A program made the position numbers and the translations under genes. DNA of 64,000 nt from Magallana gigas (Eukaryota), in NCBI RefSeq assembly GCF_963853765.1, contig NC_088857.1, positions 38,626,001-38,690,000 of the forward strand, in the 5' to 3' direction. How positions within the stretch are numbered: position 1 is the stretch's first letter; each line of letters opens with the position of its first letter. Shown here in pieces: positions 955 through 20,200 of this stretch. The notes beneath the pieces are model-generated. The model saw only the letters and a list, made by a program, of their open reading frames with translations, was not told where the DNA came from and made no database searches.

Positions 955-3292
955 AAGCGTGAAATATATATAACCATGCCTTACAAATTTCATTGATTCG
1001 TAGTTAAATCATAAAGACACTTGAATTAAAAATGTGACGAAATCAAAATATCTGAAACAGCCTCAGAGTAGTGAATATGAACTTTATCCATCGTCTTTGT
1101 TTTGAAGTTTGCAATGATTTTGACAACACTCTCTGTCTTCTGTTGGTTAATTTAAAAAATTGCGGACTTTTTTTTTTATATGTTTCGATCAGATGAAGGT
1201 GAACGCGAGTAGATTATTGAGTGTCGAAGAGACCCTTTCGAAACATGCATTTATGTCAATATCAAAATGCAATGGTATATACATCTCTTTGGAACCTTGT
1301 GGATTACTCTTGTAAAGAGATGTGCCATTTGTGGTTTTTATCCCCAACATAAAATCTACTATGCAGAAGTTCAAAAGTAGGAAGTTACTGATGAAAAATT
1401 AAAAGAAAGATGGGTTGTCCTACTTTGATCGCTTTAATGAGAGTTATCTTTCTTTTTATTCATTGGCCTTAGAATACAATTCACAAATAGGACAGGAGTG
1501 TTTGATAACAAGGGTATACTTATTAAATATAATCATATCTTTTAAAAAAACCACAATTCCAAGTTTTAGGAAAGATGTCTATGTAAAGAGTGTTAACTTT
1601 GATAAACCTTTATTAATTCAAATATAAAATAGACGTAAGATACTTGTATCAACGTTTAAAATGTTTAAAATAACACCATTAACTATTTGTAGCCCCAGTT
1701 TTTAGTTTATACCATACATTATTAAATTACATGCATATTATATAATCTAAAATAATAACAGAATTCGTCGCGATGGAGTTAGTGAAACCTGTATTCGATA
1801 AGACTTTACTAAACGATAAAAAAGTTCCGTACATTTTACATTGATAGGAATAGCTTTTAATAAATGTCGCTATTGATTTTTCGCAGTCAGAGTGACTTTA
1901 TCCATGAAGGGAATCTTGTATATATGCATAGCAAAGCCTGTAATTGACAACTCCACGGCCATACTCTGGCGAGAATAAACTGTATACATGCTTTTATTCA
2001 TGATTATAAAGTCGTTATTTTTGTCCCTGGGGTGTGACAACTCTCCGTGCTGTCTGCGGATTTATCGTTGATGATAAGAAAACTTTGCAACAACTGCATG
2101 CACGTTTTTGTTGTCAATTGATCGACTGTCTAAAACATCTAATTTTAGTCCCGATAAGTCTTTGAAGATCACAAAAAATCCTATGCAATAAAGAAATTAT
2201 ATTTCGTTTCATCAGCTATACTGTTACATGAATAGGACAACGTGATTGTGTGTGAATACAATATATAAATTATATAGATAAATCAAGGAGATCCTTAGTG
2301 GATGTAACAATACATATAAAAACTCAAAATCGGTAAATTAAAACACAAAGGATGAGTAAAATATCAGAGTTTTCATTTTCCTCTGATGTTTTACAAAACA
2401 AACAGGGTAACGTGACCTGGTAACTGTTTTGATGCACATTTCCGCACCAAATGGTGAATGCATTTTTTTAAAATAAAAATTATCAATATAATGATTACAT
2501 ATATATGAATAACATTATTTATAGTTTGTCACAACATTGTATTTGATTGATCTTTTTGCTTAGTGTGAAATCCAAATAGTGAATGCATTGTCAATTGATT
2601 ACAGTTATGTATAACTACGTGTATATGAATAACACATTAATTGTATTCAACGATTATAATACGATAGTTTTATATCGTGAAATTTTCAGTGTGAAATTTA
2701 AACATTGATCTCCGACTTAGTATGTATTCCTTTCCCCAAGAATTCCGCGTTATCTTTTTAACCTCAGTTACAATCGAGTTTGGATATTTGGTAGAAACTT
2801 TATTCTATAGATAAAGAGGCACACATAATAATGTCGGTTGATGTTGAGTTATAGAATGTACTATATGCTACTCCAGTAATACTTTGAAGTGTTGACAAAT
2901 AGCACAATCTCTATCATGTTGTATTGTCTCCCAAGTTTTTATTTTAAAAAAAATTAGATTTCTTATTGATTTTAAATATCACGAACATAATGCACTTTTG
3001 ATTAACGTTTACTATTTATTTTCAATTTCAGCTCGCAGTGATAACAGTTTACAATCGGAGAGCTGAAATGTCACCGTTAAGGAGGCTAGGTGTCAACAAA
3101 TTAACCATCAGATCTACCTATAGTTTTAAGATGTGATTTGATTATGTATAAACTATTATTTAGTAAAGAAAAGATGCATGTATTTCACTTTATGAGTTTT
3201 GGAGTTTGCCTATATTTTTTTTTATATAGAACTCTCCTTCTAAAGGAGATCAATACAGTCTAAAAATGGCCACGACCATCAAGCCCTCTGAA

Positions 3293-3808
3293 AGGGACTT
3301 GGACACGATTTTAGATCAAAATTTTCTTCTTCTTTTTTATGTATAAAATGGTTTATTTGCTCATTTCGAATGATTGACCAAAATTTGAATTTTAAAAGTC
3401 AACTTATAAGAGAGATACAGACGAAAGAAATCATTATTATGTAAACAAAGCTCGAGTCTTATATTTCTTGAAAAATAATGTAAAGTATGGAATTACCATT
3501 TTTTTAGCAAATGGCTCATGGCAAACAAGGTAAACTGATTCAATGTGTTCATAGATAATATGATAAACAAAAAAAAGCAACATTTGATTGAGTCTTATAC
3601 CAATAAAACACATAATTATGTAAACCATAACAAAGCTCGGGCTTTGTTTACAAAACAAAGATTTTCAAGCTCTGTATCTTGCTTATAACTCAATGTTTGG
3701 CTTTCAAAATTTGACAAAGCATTAAACGTACCCATATTAACCATTCTAAACATTAAAATTGGAAAAATAAAATCTTAAATTTTGAGCTCAAATCGTGACC
3801 AAGTCCCT
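3293..3808 (+). mobile_element. Kolobok-like non-autonomous DNA transposon, family A copy 1
   Basis: TIRs AGGGACTTGGACACGATTT / AAATCGTGACCAAGTCCCT; right flank TTAA, left flank TGAA. Interior is similar to the copies at 19680 and 48008. Confidence 0.8.
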
Positions 3809-4830
3809 TTAAGTGTCGATAAAAGCATAGGCATACAAAACGACATAGCTCTCAGCTAAGAGTTAAAAAAAAAAACCCATATCAAAGAAAATATTTTTAA
3901 ACTGAAGCCTGCTTCCGACATTTATTTGGAATTCGTTGGGGAAAAAAACAACAATTTTATTGTTCTATATTGTTTTTGAATCTTTGAGAGGGGGAGGAAA
4001 GACACGGCAATCCAAAAAAAAAAAAAAGATTTAAAAAAATGAACTCGACATAGACGATAGTCTAATATTACCGCCCAAAGCATCCATCTTCATATAAATA
4101 ATCATTTGTTGATACAAACATTGTGACGGCAGTGGATCATGATCGTTTGTCTGCATGCATTACATAAAATAAACATGGTTGAAAGTAGTCGTTCCGTTAT
4201 ACATGTGTCTTTTACTTATTTAACAAATTTTAATTGTCAATGAGTCCATGATTAATGAATTAGTCATTAACTCACGTCTAGTGTTTGTTCATTTTATATG
4301 GCTTTGCGGAAACACCCCTCCCATATTCTTCCATTGAATCACAATGACTCGTATATTTAATTTTTGTTTTGCATGGTCAAAATATTTAGAATTTTTACAA
4401 GTACAAACTTGTACTTGTTTTATTTCATTCTTTTCCTTTTCATAATTCTTTCACGCATGAGTAATAGTGATAGGACCAATGCCTCGACTAACGTTACAGT
4501 GTAGAAGTCACCAACATTGCAGCCCCCACCCCTCATAAAACTGTTATTTTTCTGCTGCATTTTGTCATGTAAATCATCTCCCGATATTTATTGATTATTT
4601 ATTTTTTGCACGGGGTTTTCTTTCTCGAACTGAATCATACATATTTACGTGACTTAATAGGGCACTATATATGTCGTGCAATTCATCATACGCATATTAT
4701 CTTCAAGTAAAGTCTATATGGGTAAGTTTTCTTTATGGTATAAGGGGTATGCATTTGTACTCTATGCTTGAAATGTATTATGAATCTTTCTACTTGTAAC
4801 AATGGAATTTAAAAAAAGTCTAGAGAAAAA

Positions 4831-5579
4831 TGTGACCGCGTAGTTTTTACGGTGCTAGAGAATTCTTCTGGGTCTGCATCGGTCGTGTGCAGTACGAACC
4901 GGGTGAGGGAATGTTGGCGTAAAGGGTATAAGGTATAAGGTTGAGGCACGCTGTGGGCCGTAAGGTAAAAACGAAGGGGGGTAGGTTTGCCGTATTCCCG
5001 AAGGTCCACCAGTATACAGTTCCAGAGAAATAAACCAAGTGATGAAGGATTCCGTATTTATTGGACGAGATTCAACGATGGCAACATTAAAACATTTTAA
5101 CAGACAGACATTGTACAAACAAGTCGGATATGGCCAGTAGTGGCCTCCGGACTCAAGACTCTGGGTGAGTCGGACGTGGCCGAGGCTGGCCGCCGTATTC
5201 CAGACTGCCGATTGACAATTGTACATAATTATTTATAAGAATCTGAACAATAAGTATAAATTGACAGGTGATGACATAAGTAAGCTGAGTGAAAGGTTCA
5301 CAGATATAAAATAATTAAATAAACTCAATGAGTCTTTGATGTCCAAGACATGTAAAGCTGATAATTGCACATTGTTGTTTTAAGAGATTAACAGTCCTTG
5401 AGACGTGGCACTCTGTCTCTTTGAAATCACATATAGAGTCCGAAAAGTGTCAATCACAAAATAAACTTGTAACTTAGTAAGAAATAAATTGTGAGAAAAT
5501 ATTACGAAACAGATGTTGAATTTTTAAAGTAAAGTCCAAAATAAAGTTATAATTAAACAGTGAATTTTGCACGGTGATA
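4831..5579 (-). repeat. LTR copy A (3' LTR on minus strand), 749 bp
   Basis: Minus-strand ends TATCACCG...CGGTCACA, TATAAA at 5232-5237 and AATAAA at 5057-5062. Line-by-line identical to copy B at offset 1080. Confidence 0.9.
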
Positions 5580-5618
5580 GTTTCCCACCGCTCCGGGGAA
5601 AACACGTCCTCGTGTTTT
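5580..5618 (-). promoter_or_regulatory. Candidate polypurine tract with upstream hairpin
   Basis: Minus strand reads AAAACACG-AGGA-CGTGTTTT (perfect 8-bp stem, 5599-5618), then GGAGCGGTGGGAAAC immediately before LTR A. Confidence 0.6.
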
Positions 5619-5890
5619 GAATGGAATATCACATTTCTCCTATGTTCTTTGATTTTCTTACACCGGTGACGGACGTTTGAGGACAGCTGAAGTTTCTACA
5701 GTTGACCGTTGTTTCCTGTTGATGAACAGAGAAAAATGTCTGCATAGTTCATGGCGGCTGGCACTTTTGTTGTCCATCGTTGTTACGTTGAGACTGAGTT
5801 GATGTTCAATGGGGGAAACTTGCTGGCTGAAGAGGTCCAGGATCTGACTACTGCAAAATATATGCAGCAGCCCCGGGCGTTGTTGTTACC

Positions 5891-5908
5891 CTTAGGATTC
5901 ATCCACCA
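5891..5908 (-). promoter_or_regulatory. Candidate primer-binding site
   Basis: TGGTGGATGAATCCTAAG begins 2 nt (AT) after the LTR end. Only TGGTGGA matches a typical tRNA-Ala 3' end, so the priming tRNA is unresolved. Confidence 0.55.
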
Positions 5909-5910
5909 AT

Positions 5911-6658
5911 TGTGACCGCGTAGTTTTTACGGTGCTAGAGAATTCTTCTGGGTCTGCATCGGTCGTGTGCAGTACGAACCGGGTGAGGGAATGTTGGCGT
6001 AAAGGGTATAAGGTATAAGGTTGAGGCACGCTGTGGGCCGTAAGGTAAAAACGAAGGGGGGTAGGTTTGCCGTATTCCCGAAGGTCCACCAGTATACAGT
6101 TCCAGAGAAATAAACCAAGTGATGAAGGATTCCGTATTTATTGGACGAGATTCAACGATGGCAACATTAAAACATTTTAACAGACAGACATTGTACAAAC
6201 AAGTCGGATATGGCCAGTAGTGGCCTCCGGACTCAAGACTCTGGGTGAGTCGGACGTGGCCGAGGCTGGCCGCCGTATTCCAGACTGCCGATTGACAATT
6301 GTACATAATTATTTATAAGAATCTGAACAATAAGTATAAATTGACAGGTGATGACATAAGTAAGCTGAGTGAAAGGTTCACAGATATAAAATAATTAAAT
6401 AAACTCAATGAGTCTTTGATGTCCAAGACATGTAAAGCTGATAATTGCACATTGTTGTTTTAAGAGATTAACAGTCCTTGAGACGTGGCACTCTGTCTCT
6501 TTGAAATCACATATAGAGTCCGAAAAGTGTCAATCACAAAATAAACTTGTAACTTAGTAAGAAATAAATTGTGAGAAAATATTACGAAACAGATGTTGAA
6601 TTTTTAAAGTAAAGTCCAAAATAAAGTTATAATTAAACAGTGAATTTTGCACGGTGAT
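5911..6658 (-). repeat. LTR copy B, 748 bp
   Basis: Identical to copy A except that the terminal base at the junction with copy C is missing. Confidence 0.9.
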
Positions 6659-7407
6659 TGTGACCGCGTAGTTTTTACGGTGCTAGAGAATTCTTCTGGG
6701 TCTGCATCGGTCGTGTGCAGTACGAACCGGGTGAGGGAATGTTGGCGTAAAGGGTATAAGGTATAAGGTTGAGGCACGCTGTGGGCCGTAAGGTAAAAAC
6801 GAAGGGGGGTAGGTTTGCCGTATTCCCGAAGGTCCACCAGTATACAGTTCCAGAGAAATAAACCAAGTGATGAAGGATTCCGTATTTATTGGACGAGATT
6901 CAACGATGGCAACATTAAAACATTTTAACAGACAGACATTGTACAAACAAGTCGGATATGGCCAGTAGTGGCCTCCGGACTCAAGACTCTGGGTGAGTCG
7001 GACGTGGCCGAGGCTGGCCGCCGTATTCCAGACTGCCGATTGACAATTGTACATAATTATTTATAAGAATCTGAACAATAAGTATAAATTGACAGGTGAT
7101 GACATAAGTAAGCTGAGTGAAAGGTTCACAGATATAAAATAATTAAATAAACTCAATGAGTCTTTGATGTCCAAGACATGTAAAGCTGATAATTGCACAT
7201 TGTTGTTTTAAGAGATTAACAGTCCTTGAGACGTGGCACTCTGTCTCTTTGAAATCACATATAGAGTCCGAAAAGTGTCAATCACAAAATAAACTTGTAA
7301 CTTAGTAAGAAATAAATTGTGAGAAAATATTACGAAACAGATGTTGAATTTTTAAAGTAAAGTCCAAAATAAAGTTATAATTAAACAGTGAATTTTGCAC
7401 GGTGATA
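6659..7407 (-). repeat. LTR copy C, 749 bp, directly abutting copy B
   Basis: Same sequence as A and B; the ORF-track translations inside the three copies are identical. Confidence 0.9.
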
Positions 7408-8271
7408 AAAAACTTAAAGATGCCAAAATGCACACTTTATGGAATATAGACGATTTTAACAAATCTATTTCAACTTAATCAAAACCTCACAAAATACAGG
7501 AGTTTTTGGAGTGTTCATAAGATACAATTATTTCATGCTAAATAGACCCCCCACAACCCCCATCCCCACCCCCTAAAATAAAAAAATAATTACCCCCCAC
7601 CCCCCCAAAAAAAATTAATTAAAAAAAGAATTAAAAACACCAAAACACACAAATCTGTGATGAAAACAAATTTCTGAAAATGGACTGAGTTAAATGAACG
7701 TCATAATCGCAGTCACTCTCATGACTAAGGATGCATTCGTGATTGTCCTAATTTGAGGAATGAAATCAATTGTATCTTCACTATAATTGACTCTTGGGAT
7801 AGATTTACCAACTTAAATATAGGCTGAATCTATAGAAAGCAGAAGGACTAGTATATTCTTCTTCCTAGTATTCATTTGTCCTTCGTTCACCCCTATTAGC
7901 CAAGCTAGCCCTTCATTACCGGCCAGAGCGTCTGTTTAAATGCTACACTGGTGCTCTTAAAATAGTTCCAGTATCGCCTATGTTTGATAAATCACTCGAA
8001 TTTAGCAGCTCGTTGCATACGATTCACATGCTTAATCCAAACTGAACCGTTCAGCAGTGCGTATATATATTAATATTTCAGAAATATAGGGCGTTCACGC
8101 TGCGCTTAACACAACAACACGGTATAAGCGTCGACTTCAGCGAAGCGCGACCGAACCAGCCATCGGCCAGAATCGACATTCTATACTGAGTGTGTCAGGT
8201 GTGAGACATCCTTGGAGTTTACTCTGTGAATTTATCGAAGATATCGGATTAGTAATTTAAAAGGAGGAAAA

Positions 8272-11200
8272 ATGGCTCTTGGAAGTTGTCACACATGCAT
8301 CAAATATTTGATGTTTGCCTTTAACTTTCTGTTTTGGGTAAGTGGTCTTTAATCTATTTGTAGTTTCGCTACTCCGACCCTGACGCGGTGTATGAGTGTG
8401 TGTGTTTATATCCCACCGCACATCATGCATATTCATATTCTTCGGGTTTCGTTTAGTTCTTGGGCAATGTGAGGCCTCGGTCAAACTATCGTAAAGACTT
8501 TAAAGAAGATGACAATAGGTGCGTTTTAAATGCACATAATAGGTCTTAACTAGTGATCAATGTGGAATTAAATAACCCGGTCCCGTATTCAGACAGGTTA
8601 AGTTGGGTATGACTATGGAAGAAGTTATCCTATAAAGCGGCGGCGAAATCAATGAAAGAAATGCGCCGATTCCACACTTTTTCGTCGAAAGGGAGCTTTT
8701 AAAGACGTTTCATCTAAAGAACGCATTTTGTAAATCGATGGACAACAAGGTTCCAAGAAAATTATAAACATCGAAATGAATGATCCTGCTATGTATTTGT
8801 GGCGTTGTCTTCCTTAATTATCTCAGGAATGGCATGCACTCGCCCCACAATGTAAATAAATACAACAGCATTGCAAGCTTGTAATATCAAGAGGGATATC
8901 GGTACCCATCGTTCAAAGCTTTCGACGAAACAAAAAGGAGCAATCACTGAGATCGCCACTTAGAAAGTTAACTTCGAGAGGATGTAAGGTACCCACAATG
9001 GGATAGGTGTGGGATGCTGCAAATCTTGATCTATAAATAGGTACCCGCCCCGGTAGAAGAGGAAGCACACTGGCGGTAGTATAGACCTGAGTTTGGCTAC
9101 AGGGATAAGAATTTGTGGCACGATGAATCCGTAAACTCTGATGGTTATCAGGTGATGATACGACCCCCGCAATAGGTCGCCGCGGGGATGCCTTCCCCCC
9201 GGATGTCGAACACCTCTACACCTCCGATAAACCAACATGCATGTTTGCTCGTTACGACATTGAATGACGGATAGGACATTTATTAGCTCCCAAACAACTA
9301 GCATTTCAACAACCTTGGAATGTATGTACTCGAGCGAGCCATATCAGCCGAGCAATGCATTTTTAGGAGGGATTAGATACACACACACATGTATATACAC
9401 CCCCCCCCCCCCACACACACACACTACATGTAAGGGGATCAAAAGATGAGATTATCTCTTAACAGAGTTTGTGGCTCCTGACAGTTTGTGCCGTGTTTCC
9501 CCCCACATTCTGATAAGTTTACATGGATAGTGAATCAGTTCACGGAATCCCTGTACATGCAGATATCGACCACACTATTTGTAAAGGGTAGTCGCCAATA
9601 AATTGTACACAGACTTTAATATGTAAAAGTTATGCCCAAAGCAACGTTATAAAATGCAATAATTGTGTGATAACGAGGATATATTTTGATTAAAATGTCC
9701 GCCTGAGAAGACATATATAACTAAATAAACACCGTCATATCTTTACAAACTGTGGTTTTTTATTTGTATTTTGTCCCACACGATACCTATGCTGGGTTTA
9801 GAACATTTCATTTTTTTTCTTCAAAATATATACTCAACATATACATGTACACGTACCTCTTTATGCAATACTAGTATCATTATGATTTTCTCAAAGTCTA
9901 CAGAATTAAAGGTTTTTCATTAGTGTACATCGATAGAGGGTCCTAAATGAGGGCGGGTTGATGGGTCCCGTCTCCTCGGGTCACAGCAGCCACAGGCTGG
10001 GATGTCATAACGAGACCGCTGCCATTATCGCTACATCTGGTCCCATTTAACGCACCATCACTCAGGAGCTAGGGGGTCATTAAGGTCCCGTTGACCAGGA
10101 GCAATGTTTGTACAAATTTCGCCGCCAAAAAAATTCTTCTTTCTATATGCGAGTTGCACTGACTCCACTGGTTGTAAAGTGTATAGTTTGTCATTATGGT
10201 CTCTTGTCATTAGTGAAAACCACAGAACTGCGAAAAGCATTTTAAGTGCGCAAGTTGTCAGCAAAGTTAAAGTCAGTGAATTGGACTTCATTTTACAATG
10301 AATGAACATTGGGGTCACATGGGAGAGAATTTGTAGAATTTTTCTTTTCACGAAACTGATCGTTTTTGCCTTATTTCCAAGGTTTTCTATTTCAGAAGAA
10401 AAATGAATATCGTTTGTACACAGCACAATGTAACAATGACCTTCAACTTTGTGTAAAGACGTTTTGATCAATTACAGAAAAACCCAAATTTGAATGACTT
10501 GGTTTTATTTTAAGAACATGAAAATGCATAGTAATTCTTATGCAAAACTAATTTATTCAGATTATGTTGCGTTCTAATGAATTTTTTTTTTACAAAGGGC
10601 TTGCAAGCTTAATTTCTTTCATGATATGAATAACTCCTGTGTTTTGTATGTCTAGTTTCTTTTTTTACCCTTTTCACTTATTATAAAAGCGACGGTCGGT
10701 ACTTTCATTCAGCCCCGTGTGTTTGTTAAACCTATAACTTGCCAGCAGGTACAACTGTGCGAAATAAAGCTAACTAGATGAAGTTACAAAGGTGTGACCC
10801 ACGGCCTTTTGTGTGCGGGCATTCAGCCGAGATTATCACCTTGTTGTTTTTCGTTTTCGCACTAAATTCCTCTTTGGTAAAGACCAACAAAAATCGAATT
10901 ATAATTATATATGCAGAAAAAGTTTCAGATTGTTATATTGCGAGCAATGGAGCGTTTATACTTGTATATTTCATTGGGGGCGGGGGGGGGGGGGGGGGGA
11001 TTGCAATTTTATGCTTTTATGTCATGGGTCCTTGATGAATAAGGAGTAACAAAACCTTACCGTTGACTAAAAATTTATTACGATGATTGCGGGGGCCGTG
11101 TTGTTATTTGTACACATGCCAAGTCAGAGAAAACAAATTACACTCTTGCTTTTCTTTTGATGAAGCCTTAGAAATGTACGTTTATCTCTGTCCCTAATTT

Positions 11201-17200: not shown

Positions 17201-20200
17201 TTGTGTATACCATTCCTTCCTACGTGTATGCATAATTATATATTACGATGGTAGTAAAATGGAAAGGTTATTAAAATAATAATAATTCGTATAAAAATGC
17301 ATATTTTTCTTTTTTGATATTGATATGCAATTTGCACCAGCTTTTTTTAACGGTGAGCGTGTGTAAAATGAAATTCAAATTGACCTTTTTTTAAAAAAAT
17401 GTTATTATACAATTGTTAATCTTATTCTGCGAAACGAATTTTACTTCCTGTTGAGGATGCAGGTTTAGTGCAACAGTACGTATATCATTTTTATACGTTA
17501 TGAATAAAAAAAAGCCACCCACCAAACAAACACTTAGAGCTTAAATGTAAATAATATATATGAATATTAATACATGCATTGAAACAGTCCAATGAAGTCA
17601 TAAGCTTAAGTAAGTACTGCACTAGTATCTAAATGTGACCTCTGATGAAAACCGTACAAAGCAGAATAAAACAGGGAAGTTGTTATATGACACAGTCTTG
17701 AAAGTCATGATTATAGAAGTAGTCCATATATAATCCATGGTGTGTAAACACACCACTTTCCTTGCCAACATTATTATGTAATCTGTAAACAGAAAGTGTG
17801 CACGTTGCTTGATAAATGTTCAAATGGTAATCGACAGTCTTTTATTATCTATTGCAATGGAACAGCAAGCATCACAGATCGCATGCCCTGTCAATATTTT
17901 GTCGGAATTCAGAGGTCGACAGGCACATTGTAACGTTCTGTTAGGCTATCAACAGCTCCGCAAACATTACCAAACAATGTGCTTAGATTGCCATTAAAAC
18001 GCAAATATTTAGGAGATGAAAAACTTTGTTCCAACCCAGGGTTAGGCTAGGGCCATTGCATTAAGTCAAAGGTTTTTGCCATGTAGGTTTATCGAAACTG
18101 TTGACAAAGTTGAGGCCCTTGGATAATGCACATTCTTTTAAATACATGTAAATTGTTTGTGAAGATGGGGGCGGCAAAGTAGTTGTAAGGGTCAAATTCA
18201 CAACCATAAAGCCATAATTAAAAAATGCAACATGATAAAAATAGTACGTACTCTTCACCGTTAAATTACAGGAATTTTTTTGGTTATATATCAACCACTT
18301 GAAAAAATCCCAACATTTACATGAAATCATGAGTTTAAGCTTGTCAGCATGATATTAATGTTACTTTGATTTCTACTTCAGCTGCTGGGATGTGCTATGT
18401 TAGGAGTCGGGATCTGGCTCCTCGTCAGCGATGACTTCACAAAATATTCCGATGCCGATGATAGTTTGAGTTTCATCTACACTGGAGCCTACATCCTTGT
18501 GGCTATTGGCGGCCTAATAATGATAATCGGCTTCTTAGGATGTTGTGGCGCAATTAGGGAAAGCCAATGTATGCTGGGATGTGTAAGTTTCCCATCTGGT
18601 AAACTGAATATCCGATGATTATACAGACAATTATTAAAATCCAATACTTTATATAATAAGTTAAAGGACGACGTCTTATTACCTCTCGCTCAACTAATTA
18701 ATTATAACCACAGTGACAGAATGTGGCATTTGCATTGCCTGCTTGGGTGTAAAAGCACTCTAACGAAAACTGAAAATACATGAACACATTAAAATTAATT
18801 CTATTTGCTCCTTTAAACAACTTTAGTTTACTACAGTACATGTAAATTTAAATGTTCGGTCATTTTCGTTTCGTTATGACTCCTGGCTAAGTACAGTGTA
18901 AAGTCATTTATATTCATGGATAATTTCGTGAGGATTTATTTTCGTGGATTTTTTTTTTCATTTTATTTTACTAATAAATAATTACTCTATTCAACCTCAT
19001 AATTGAGTTTTCAACTCAGATCCATGGAGCAGTGATGACTTTTTAGTGCAAGCGCCTGCTTTGAATTTTTTCCCCGAAAAAACTACACCTACTAGTATTA
19101 CTTATGTATTATAATTAATGCCAATAAATGTGGGTACGAAGATTCACAAACTACACGAAATAGACCTATAACCAATTTGTCTTGATGTACTTTGGTGACA
19201 CGCGTACATGTATTCTTAAAAAAGCTGTCGTTACAGTTTGGTATAATAAAGCAGTCTTATTTGTCTCTTTAGTTCTTTTTCCTGTTATTCATCATCTTTG
19301 CGGTCTTACTTGGGGCTGGAATCTGGGCAGTTATTTCGAAAGATGAAGTAAGTATAAAGAATTAAACTGCATAAATAACTCAAATAATGATTTTATTTAC
19401 TATAAATATAATTCTGAGTATAAAGTGGTCAAAGTGTATACCATCAACGTTATTCCATTTTCAATGTTTTTGTACACGCTTTAAAAACTTTCTTCTTCAG
19501 GTACGGTCAATAGTGAAAGAAGTATTAGATAAACAGATTGAGCGAGCATGTGACCCTAAAGAACCCAACTCGAAGAGTTTGAACTTTCTTAACCACGTAC
19601 AGGAACAGGCAAGTGTTTGGACGGAAGGGATGACATCATTTTATCAACAACGTTTACCATTTTGATTTAAAGAGTTTAAAGGACCTAGACACGATTTTAG
19701 ATGAACATTTTATCAATATGTGTAAAATGGTTTACTTGACGTGTATTTTTAATGATTCACCGAAATTTGAATGTAAGGAGTCAAGATATAAGCGAAATAC
19801 AGAGGAAAGAAGTTGTTGTTTTGTAAACAAAGCTCAAGTCTTATATTTGTTTACAAATAATGTAAAGTAATTACCTTTTTTGACAAAATAGCTTGTGTCA
19901 GACAGAGTAAACTGATTCAATAAGTTCATGAATATATTATCAACAGCAAAAAGCAACATAAGATTGAAACTTATACCAATACAACACATAAGTAAACATT
20001 AACAAGACTCGAGTTTTGTTTACAAAACAGAGAATTCTTACCTCTTCAAATAACTGCTTGTAACTCAATTTTTGACTTTCAAATTTTACATAGCATAGAA
20101 CATTCATGTTGATAATTATAGACATTACAAATGAAAAAATAATTTTTAAAAAAAATTTAAGCTCAAATCATGATTAATTAATTAAGTCCCTTTAATTTCA

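Follow-up and report, generated by a model that had tools for sequence, protein, structure and literature searches.

The stretch analyzed here, called the window, comprises 64,000 nucleotides on contig C5 of the 564-Mb, 29-contig genome of the oyster Magallana gigas. Its segment 4831-7407, upstream of a tetraspanin gene, is very probably a recent, polymorphic copy of a non-autonomous long terminal repeat (LTR) retrotransposon family. Members of this family combine LTRs of 749 nt with a core of 331 nt and a target-site duplication (TSD) of 4 bp; the copy lies in minus orientation and contains a direct LTR-LTR joint bearing the signature of a 2-LTR circle or of end-joined complementary DNA (cDNA). 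The features of the locus are listed below, the LTR copies being lettered from left to right; ORF stands for open reading frame and PBS for primer-binding site.

4827-4830, no strand: left TSD, AAAA, placed by the 4-bp rule of the family and the A count of the empty allele
4831-5579, minus strand: LTR copy A, 749 nt, the 3' LTR when the element is read in its own direction
5237-5232 and 5062-5057, minus strand: TATAAA and AATAAA, respectively, in LTR copy A
5580-5910, minus strand: core, 331 nt, non-coding, recurring genome-wide; only its two ends are common to an ORF-bearing sister family
5580-5594, minus strand: polypurine-tract-like run, minus-strand GGAGCGGTGGGAAAC, abutting LTR A; sister families carry purine-rich tracts at the same place
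5599-5618, minus strand: perfect 8-bp hairpin with a 4-nt loop and an invariant 18-nt center
5846-5872, minus strand: leader stem-loop of 10 bp, conserved in four families
5895-5908, minus strand: PBS-like site, minus-strand TGGTGGATGAATCC, starting with TGG, 2 nt (5909-5910) past the LTR end ..CACA
5911-6658, minus strand: LTR copy B, 748 nt, the inner 5' LTR, its terminal base missing at the junction
6658-6659, no strand: head-to-tail LTR-LTR junction GGTGAT/TGTGACC, with no target duplication between the LTRs
6659-7407, minus strand: LTR copy C, 749 nt, the outer 5' LTR
7408-7411, no strand: right TSD, AAAA, placed by the A count of the empty allele and the family rule
8273-8338, plus strand: putative first coding exon of the tetraspanin gene (ATG, 22 codons, GT donor), 866 bp downstream of the insertion

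Structure of the insertion and its empty allele

Three direct repeat copies and a single 331-nt spacer make up the whole of 4831-7407, with repeat periods of 1080 and 748 nt. Copies A (4831-5578), B (5911-6658) and C (6659-7406) are pairwise 100% identical across 748 nt, and A and C run one further base (A), absent from B, to reach 749 nt (TGTGACC...GGTGATA). A preliminary description of this DNA had reported 749-bp LTRs around a 331-bp non-coding core, with A and B identical and C apparently so, and these measurements bear it out, B being 748 nt long. The PBS-like site, perfect 8-bp hairpin and polypurine tract that it named were all located in the core, and the TATA and poly(A) signals that it had placed in the LTRs are each present once per LTR. 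The GC content reaches 40% in the repeat and 46% in the core, for 34% in the window. No real coding capacity is present in the interior. The sole sizeable ORF, of 123 aa on the minus strand, lies inside each LTR and is broken by stop codons in 20/20 other LTR copies compared, so it is a chance ORF and was rejected as a coding gene. Neither an Rfam search (E up to 1) nor ARAGORN gave any RNA gene, tRNA included, in the window DNA, and no further piece of the family lies within the 64 kb beyond 4831-7407.

The sense strand of the element is the minus strand of the window. On that strand, the core opens with AT followed by TGGTGGATGAATCC, directly past the LTR end ..GGTCACA, and closes with the purine-rich run abutting the next LTR (5580-5594). 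Each motif occurs just once in the minus-strand LTR, TATAAA at position 343 and AATAAA at position 518, 175 nt apart, whereas such AT-rich motifs are scattered on the plus strand. The strongest evidence for the minus orientation comes from the related families, since every one examined carries its ORF on this strand between leader and hairpin.

The ends of the LTR and the length of the TSD were established across the family. In 26/26 copies, GGTGAT is followed by A, and the 4-bp sequences to the left and right of the copy agree in 20/26 (11/14 complete elements and 9/12 solo LTRs, the latter as expected from LTR-LTR recombination), so the LTR measures 749 nt and the TSD 4 bp. A 5-bp model fits only 9/26 copies. 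The target sites of the family are AT-rich, and the flanks of the window insertion are themselves runs of A. As the empty allele reads GAG, six A and C, and the filled allele five A, the element and five A after the LTR's terminal A, the duplication at this site is also 4 bp (AAAA), as in the family. The 5-bp TSD (AAAAA flanks) initially proposed has to be shortened accordingly.

The empty allele was recovered from reads mapped onto window positions 4400-7850, taken from three oyster DNA runs of three studies (X1, X2 and X4) and one poly(A) RNA run. In each of X2 and X4, position 4825 is joined straight to 7407, with five ambiguous A's, within a single contig whose depth (93.1 and 87.1, respectively) equals that of the flanks. 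The same empty-site join is found in X1, where the haplotype has an additional A and C>T at position 4454, this left-flank variant being the only allele seen there, and one RNA read pair spans the empty joint. Among the contigs listed for X1, X2 and X4, none bridges a boundary between flank and LTR. The insertion is thus absent from, or not detected in, 3/3 other samples, and it is polymorphic in the oyster population, where the preliminary description had only suggested a possible polymorphism. Its view of a very young element holds as well, because identical LTRs together with an empty site in three other samples indicate a very recent insertion.

A non-autonomous family and its coding relatives

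The LTR used as a query of the genome gave 592 first-look candidates and 40 scored matches at 94-97% identity, whereas the core gave 101 candidates, almost all full length, with full-length matches at 40+ scored loci. LTR starts (first 22 nt, <=3 mismatches) occur at 354 genomic sites versus 0/1 in the control, and LTR/core junctions at 39 sites for one core end and 51 for the other, which supplies the copy number that the preliminary description had called for. The loci read are mostly LTR-core-LTR or solo LTR, with one LTR-core-LTR-core-LTR. Because LTR-core-LTR with the same 331-nt core recurs at many loci, the window copy is not a one-off deletion, the case that the preliminary description had foreseen should all other hits be solo LTRs or full-length elements.

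At least 16 complete LTR-core-LTR copies are present. Their LTR pairs are 100% identical in 8/16 and 97.7-99.9% identical in the rest, and LTRs of different copies diverge by ~3-6%. These two observations fit several lineages, each recently transposed, and support the earlier view of an active, non-autonomous family. A mosaic or recombinant origin of the window LTR was rejected, as its differences from relatives are spread out, bar one 8-bp duplication.

Some copies also draw attention to larger rearrangements. One solo LTR with identical 20-nt flanks on both sides is found on two chromosome-scale contigs (G000:C4:5820664-5821401, locus L004, and G000:C3:45815772-45816509, locus L005), either by inter-chromosomal segmental duplication or by a misplaced assembly piece. 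Four LTR starts on the same strand, at G000:C1:32648544, 32694400, 32736336 and 32778292, are spaced 42-46 kb apart, which suggests a large tandem segmental duplication containing one family copy.

Besides its own copies, the window element has sister families that carry a protein. The element at locus L066 on contig C1 has an LTR whose identity to the window LTR is 91% in the first 232 nt and 75% further on. Its interior of 975 nt has in common with the window core only ~40 nt on the polypurine side, hairpin included, and ~97 nt on the PBS side, and a 276-aa minus-strand ORF stands between these two core-like ends. The middle of the window core showed no homology to this ORF by blastn or tblastn. 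The ORF exists in twelve near-identical copies, ten of them open, and ~25 further ORFs of 226-321 aa match it at 25-38% identity. The readable relatives (L068, L069 and L070-L072) are LTR elements of ~1.6-1.7 kb with one ORF and no pol, and the two LTRs of one sister element, 586 nt each, are 100% identical.

Across the sister families, the LTR bodies are unrelated, the leader is 83% identical over ~100 nt, and both the leader stem-loop and the hairpin center are conserved. The 18-nt hairpin center is invariant in 22 copies of the window family, and the exact 18-mer is found at 81 genomic sites versus 0 in the control, spread over several families. An alignment of four families shows one compensatory change from a G:C to an A:U pair in the leader stem-loop, together with one-sided changes that keep the pairing, and the leader motif occurs at 74 genomic sites versus 0 in the control. 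The polypurine tract is clearer in the L070-L072 family than in the window element.

Each sister family includes one zinc-knuckle coiled-coil protein of 260-340 aa. In the 276-aa protein, a predicted coiled coil comes after a canonical CX2CX4HX4C knuckle, and the aligned sister proteins share conserved N-terminal, knuckle and LxELPF-like motifs. The best PDB matches of the knuckle are retroviral nucleocapsid knuckles, at weak scores (E 0.002-0.1). AlphaFold2 predicts a single helix of ~175 residues (pLDDT >90) without a globular domain of capsid type. Pfam (no Retrotrans_gag), a PDB profile search and AlphaFold2 all failed to reveal a capsid domain in the sister families' protein. A word-based search of 5.8 billion proteins returned only 7 unnamed clusters, all from short Logan contigs, and no named or annotated relative.

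Two of the sister loci show further peculiarities. At L066 (G000:C1:72988100-72998099), positions 1483-7348 hold a long interspersed nuclear element (LINE) with an intact 551-aa ORF1 and a 1162-aa ORF2 (endonuclease and reverse transcriptase), which sits in the middle LTR of an LTR-ORF-LTR-ORF-LTR tandem and is bordered by a 90-bp direct repeat of LTR sequence. At L068 (G000:C5:21812500-21821999), part of the family's own leader recurs in inverted form as the right flank of the element (8487-8527), a sign that this element may be nested in another copy.

Judged from these comparisons, the window element appears to be an ORF-less derivative retaining only the shared cis elements, as expected of a parasite of the same replication machinery. 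It encodes nothing and would act through cis signals only, namely the LTR ends, TATAAA, the poly(A) signal, the PBS-like site, the leader, the hairpin and the polypurine tract, each with a presumed role. Its RNA would be packaged, reverse-transcribed and integrated by proteins supplied in trans, which may include the zinc-knuckle coiled-coil protein of a sister family along with the reverse transcriptase and integrase of a separate partner.

The LTR-LTR junction and competing explanations

On the sense strand, the window copy reads LTR(C)-LTR(B)-core-LTR(A). At the joint between C and B, the full 3' end of one LTR is followed by an LTR without its first base. The same joint can be parsed as an LTR end and a 2-nt spacer AT, joined to an LTR short of three bases, AT being common to both parses. 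When a pattern of LTR end and LTR start separated by a gap of 0-14 nt was sought, the window site was the only one in the 564-Mb genome. Unequal exchange between LTRs yields shared LTRs, as in the LTR-core-LTR-core-LTR trimer, and not abutting ones, so it does not explain the joint. Since a TSD is also absent from the joint, the latter resembles the junction of a 2-LTR circle or of end-joined cDNA. As to the origin of the third LTR, we infer that the joint would have been brought in when an aberrant or dimeric cDNA integrated and LTRs then recombined, or else when a circle recombined with a resident LTR.

This second route can be stated as a separate account, in which a 2-LTR circle or end-joined cDNA dimer recombined homologously with a resident copy instead of an aberrant cDNA being integrated. 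By the reasoning of this analysis, a 2-LTR circle crossed into a solo LTR gives exactly LTR-LTR-core-LTR, and the family is rich in solo LTRs and has one tandem trimer. The account is nevertheless quite unlikely, as it presupposes an older insertion here, where 3/3 other samples have an empty site, as well as full identity of all LTRs. It is in any case a sub-variant of the explanation by aberrant cDNA, and the present data do not separate the two. Tandem dimers of transposable elements by double insertion have been documented in Drosophila (PMC5932611), and the oyster family is active and targets AT-rich sites. A second copy could have landed at the edge of the first and been reduced to a solo LTR. 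However, two elements inserted into one target should be separated by a TSD (PMC5932611), whereas nothing lies between the LTRs where a 4-bp target is expected, and one base is even missing. The 4 bp flanking copy C do not match either (TGAT versus AAAA), and three events would be required with zero mutations in any LTR, which makes two successive insertions very improbable.

A simpler possibility is that the allele is an ordinary LTR-core-LTR and that the third identical LTR results from an assembly error expanding a perfect repeat. The three LTRs are 100% identical and cannot be told apart by sequence, other LTR-LTR junctions are absent from the genome, and insertion-carrying reads are absent from the mapped runs. 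Against this, the near chromosome-complete assembly (29 contigs, 564 Mb) implies long reads spanning 2.6 kb, and the junction is not a clean unit repeat but misses one base, as in end-joined cDNA junctions. In addition, collapse is a commoner assembly error than expansion for identical repeats. An assembly error is thus held to be unlikely, though worth keeping in mind. The direct repeats with two periods of 1080 and 748 nt could also be taken for a satellite-like repeat, or for a local duplication, tandem or segmental, instead of a retrotransposon. This idea is hardly credible in view of the hundreds of dispersed copies with defined ends, 4-bp TSDs and solo forms, and of the precise empty allele at this very site.

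The reading as a recent LTR retrotransposon copy with a circle-type or end-joined cDNA junction also has to face several observations that weigh against it. The three-LTR arrangement is seen in the assembly only, as the mapped runs carry no insertion. The closest other LTR in the assembly is ~7 substitutions and an indel away from the window LTR, which means that this assembly lacks the source copy. In sense orientation, 26/26 copies have LTRs bounded by TA...CA instead of TG...CA; each sister family likewise has one CA end and one TA end. Regarding orientation, 17 RNA reads match at >=97% identity, a number too small to weigh, and come from other copies; their first mate is mostly minus, so that, if the library is of the standard stranded kind, the RNA would be plus-strand and run antisense to the proposed orientation. 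A genome search for a tRNA gene whose acceptor stem would match the PBS-like site came back empty, and TGG is displaced in one sister family, so tRNA priming is unproven.

The other difficulties concern the partner. The search proposed in the preliminary description, for an autonomous element with the same LTR ends and PBS, found none among the loci read, which do not include 20 leader sites with a shorter spacer. A genome search for the 14-nt PBS joined to a different LTR gave only variants of the window family. All hairpin sites are attributable to small elements, either read directly or by a spacing of 860-960 nt to a leader site. A chromodomain Gypsy adjoining a degraded copy was rejected as a partner, having its own, different PBS and LTR. 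The dependence on a Gypsy-type element that had been put forward is therefore unproven, although compatible with the 4-bp TSD.

Other candidates were discarded as well. The solo LTR L011, whose flank begins like the core, is accompanied within 10 kb by neither a second LTR nor a relevant ORF, and partial core matches on C1 and C9 are deleted copies. The 20 shorter-spacer leader sites fall into three sequence variants, have no conserved hairpin nearby and show no detectable counterpart of the 276-aa ORF; they include G000 C1:10048339, C1:16157484, C1:45711617, C2:5370527, C2:32789953, C3:21781971, C3:59561477, C4:4178994, C4:25966768, C4:39826401 and C5:8881660. This leader type gave 0 matches in a metagenome scan and none in the loci read. 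These sites are possible pol-bearing relatives and the best remaining partner candidates.

The chromodomain Gypsy itself, at L063 (G000:C1:18815500-18825499), occupies positions 1857-6970 on the minus strand and is apparently intact. It includes a gag of 313 aa, a pol of 1011 aa (reverse transcriptase, RNase H and integrase), a chromodomain ORF and its own PBS-like site TGGTGGAAATCCGG.

Relation to known elements and genomic context

The window family works as a non-autonomous LTR element of the TRIM (terminal-repeat retrotransposon in miniature) or LARD (large retrotransposon derivative) type, fitting neither size definition. LARDs, described in plants, combine long LTRs with a non-coding interior of several kb and a conserved structure. 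The window family resembles them by its long LTRs and its structurally conserved, non-coding interior and differs from them by a core of merely 331 nt. With TRIMs, including the biv-TRIMs of bivalves (PMC6934838), it shares a non-coding core, direct terminal repeats, solo repeats and tandem LTR-core-LTR-core-LTR forms. As in TRIMs, a PBS (PBS-like here) and a polypurine tract bound the interior, and mobilization in trans is presumed, the partner often being unknown. However, TRIMs are defined by terminal repeats of ~100-250 bp and a total under 1 kb (PMC6934838), whereas the LTR here is 749 nt and the canonical element 1829 nt long. Moreover, the family has a TGG-type PBS-like site, unlike biv-TRIMs, and the conserved inner-domain segment of biv-TRIMs (PMC6934838) has 0 matches with <=2 mismatches in the window. 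Helenus/Cassandra-type TRIMs (PMC10886601) are likewise animal non-autonomous LTR elements with 4-bp TSDs. Those elements carry small-RNA genes in the LTR, whereas the LTR and core of the window element display no tRNA-like or 5S-like sequence by Rfam and ARAGORN.

The sister families recall the TR-GAG elements of plants (PMC4350172), which are also short LTR elements with a single ORF and no pol; among the matches listed, the TR-GAG literature concerns plants. TR-GAGs encode a genuine Gag, whereas the sister ORF combines a zinc knuckle with the ~175-residue helix and no predicted capsid-like fold, and the window element, with no ORF, lacks the single Gag ORF that defines them. As for the joint, both the rare genomic LTR-LTR tandem junctions of Drosophila (PMC5932611) and 2-LTR circles display, as here, a head-to-tail joint without a shared LTR. 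The window joint differs in being located inside a TSD-flanked, polymorphic, non-autonomous insertion and in having lost one base.

A wider reading follows the same comparisons and is offered tentatively, as falling slightly short of probable. According to it, small LTR retrotransposons of ~1.6-1.8 kb without pol would form an undescribed superfamily in animals, with the window element as a member that has no ORF. The coding members would carry one capsid-less protein made of one or more nucleocapsid-type zinc knuckles and a long coiled coil, and all families would share the leader stem-loop and, beside the polypurine tract, the invariant 18-nt hairpin. Several families pair identical LTRs with intact ORFs, which would point to continuing activity with borrowed reverse transcriptase and integrase. 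The LTR-LTR joint would then be a rare germline record of a circle junction or of end-joined cDNA.

The insertion ends 866 bp before the ATG at 8273, in line with the ~0.9 kb first estimated. The tetraspanin assignment comes from a downstream exon (18370-18585) matching the Pfam family Tetraspanin (PF00335) with an E value of 1.6e-14, two further exons matching weakly. Low-level poly(A) RNA reads lie on both flanks of the insertion site (window 4632-4863 and 7416-7531). Together with the read pair across the empty allele, they indicate that the region upstream of the tetraspanin ATG is transcribed in animals without the insertion. Between the insertion and the tetraspanin start, window positions 7545-7640 form a C-rich then A-rich low-complexity tract, in which reads seem to be cut at 7588-7631.

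The locus offers a concrete, datable case of ongoing LTR-retrotransposon activity in the oyster, with an insertion segregating near a tetraspanin gene. Current models are not overturned, the value of the locus being that of a tractable system and of a structural variant that is a candidate for an effect on gene regulation. For the related small LTR elements, whose sole protein is not of the capsid type, one is led to ask how their RNAs are packaged and which element gives the polymerase. The LTR-LTR joint, for its part, may be what a circular or end-joined cDNA intermediate left behind in the germline.

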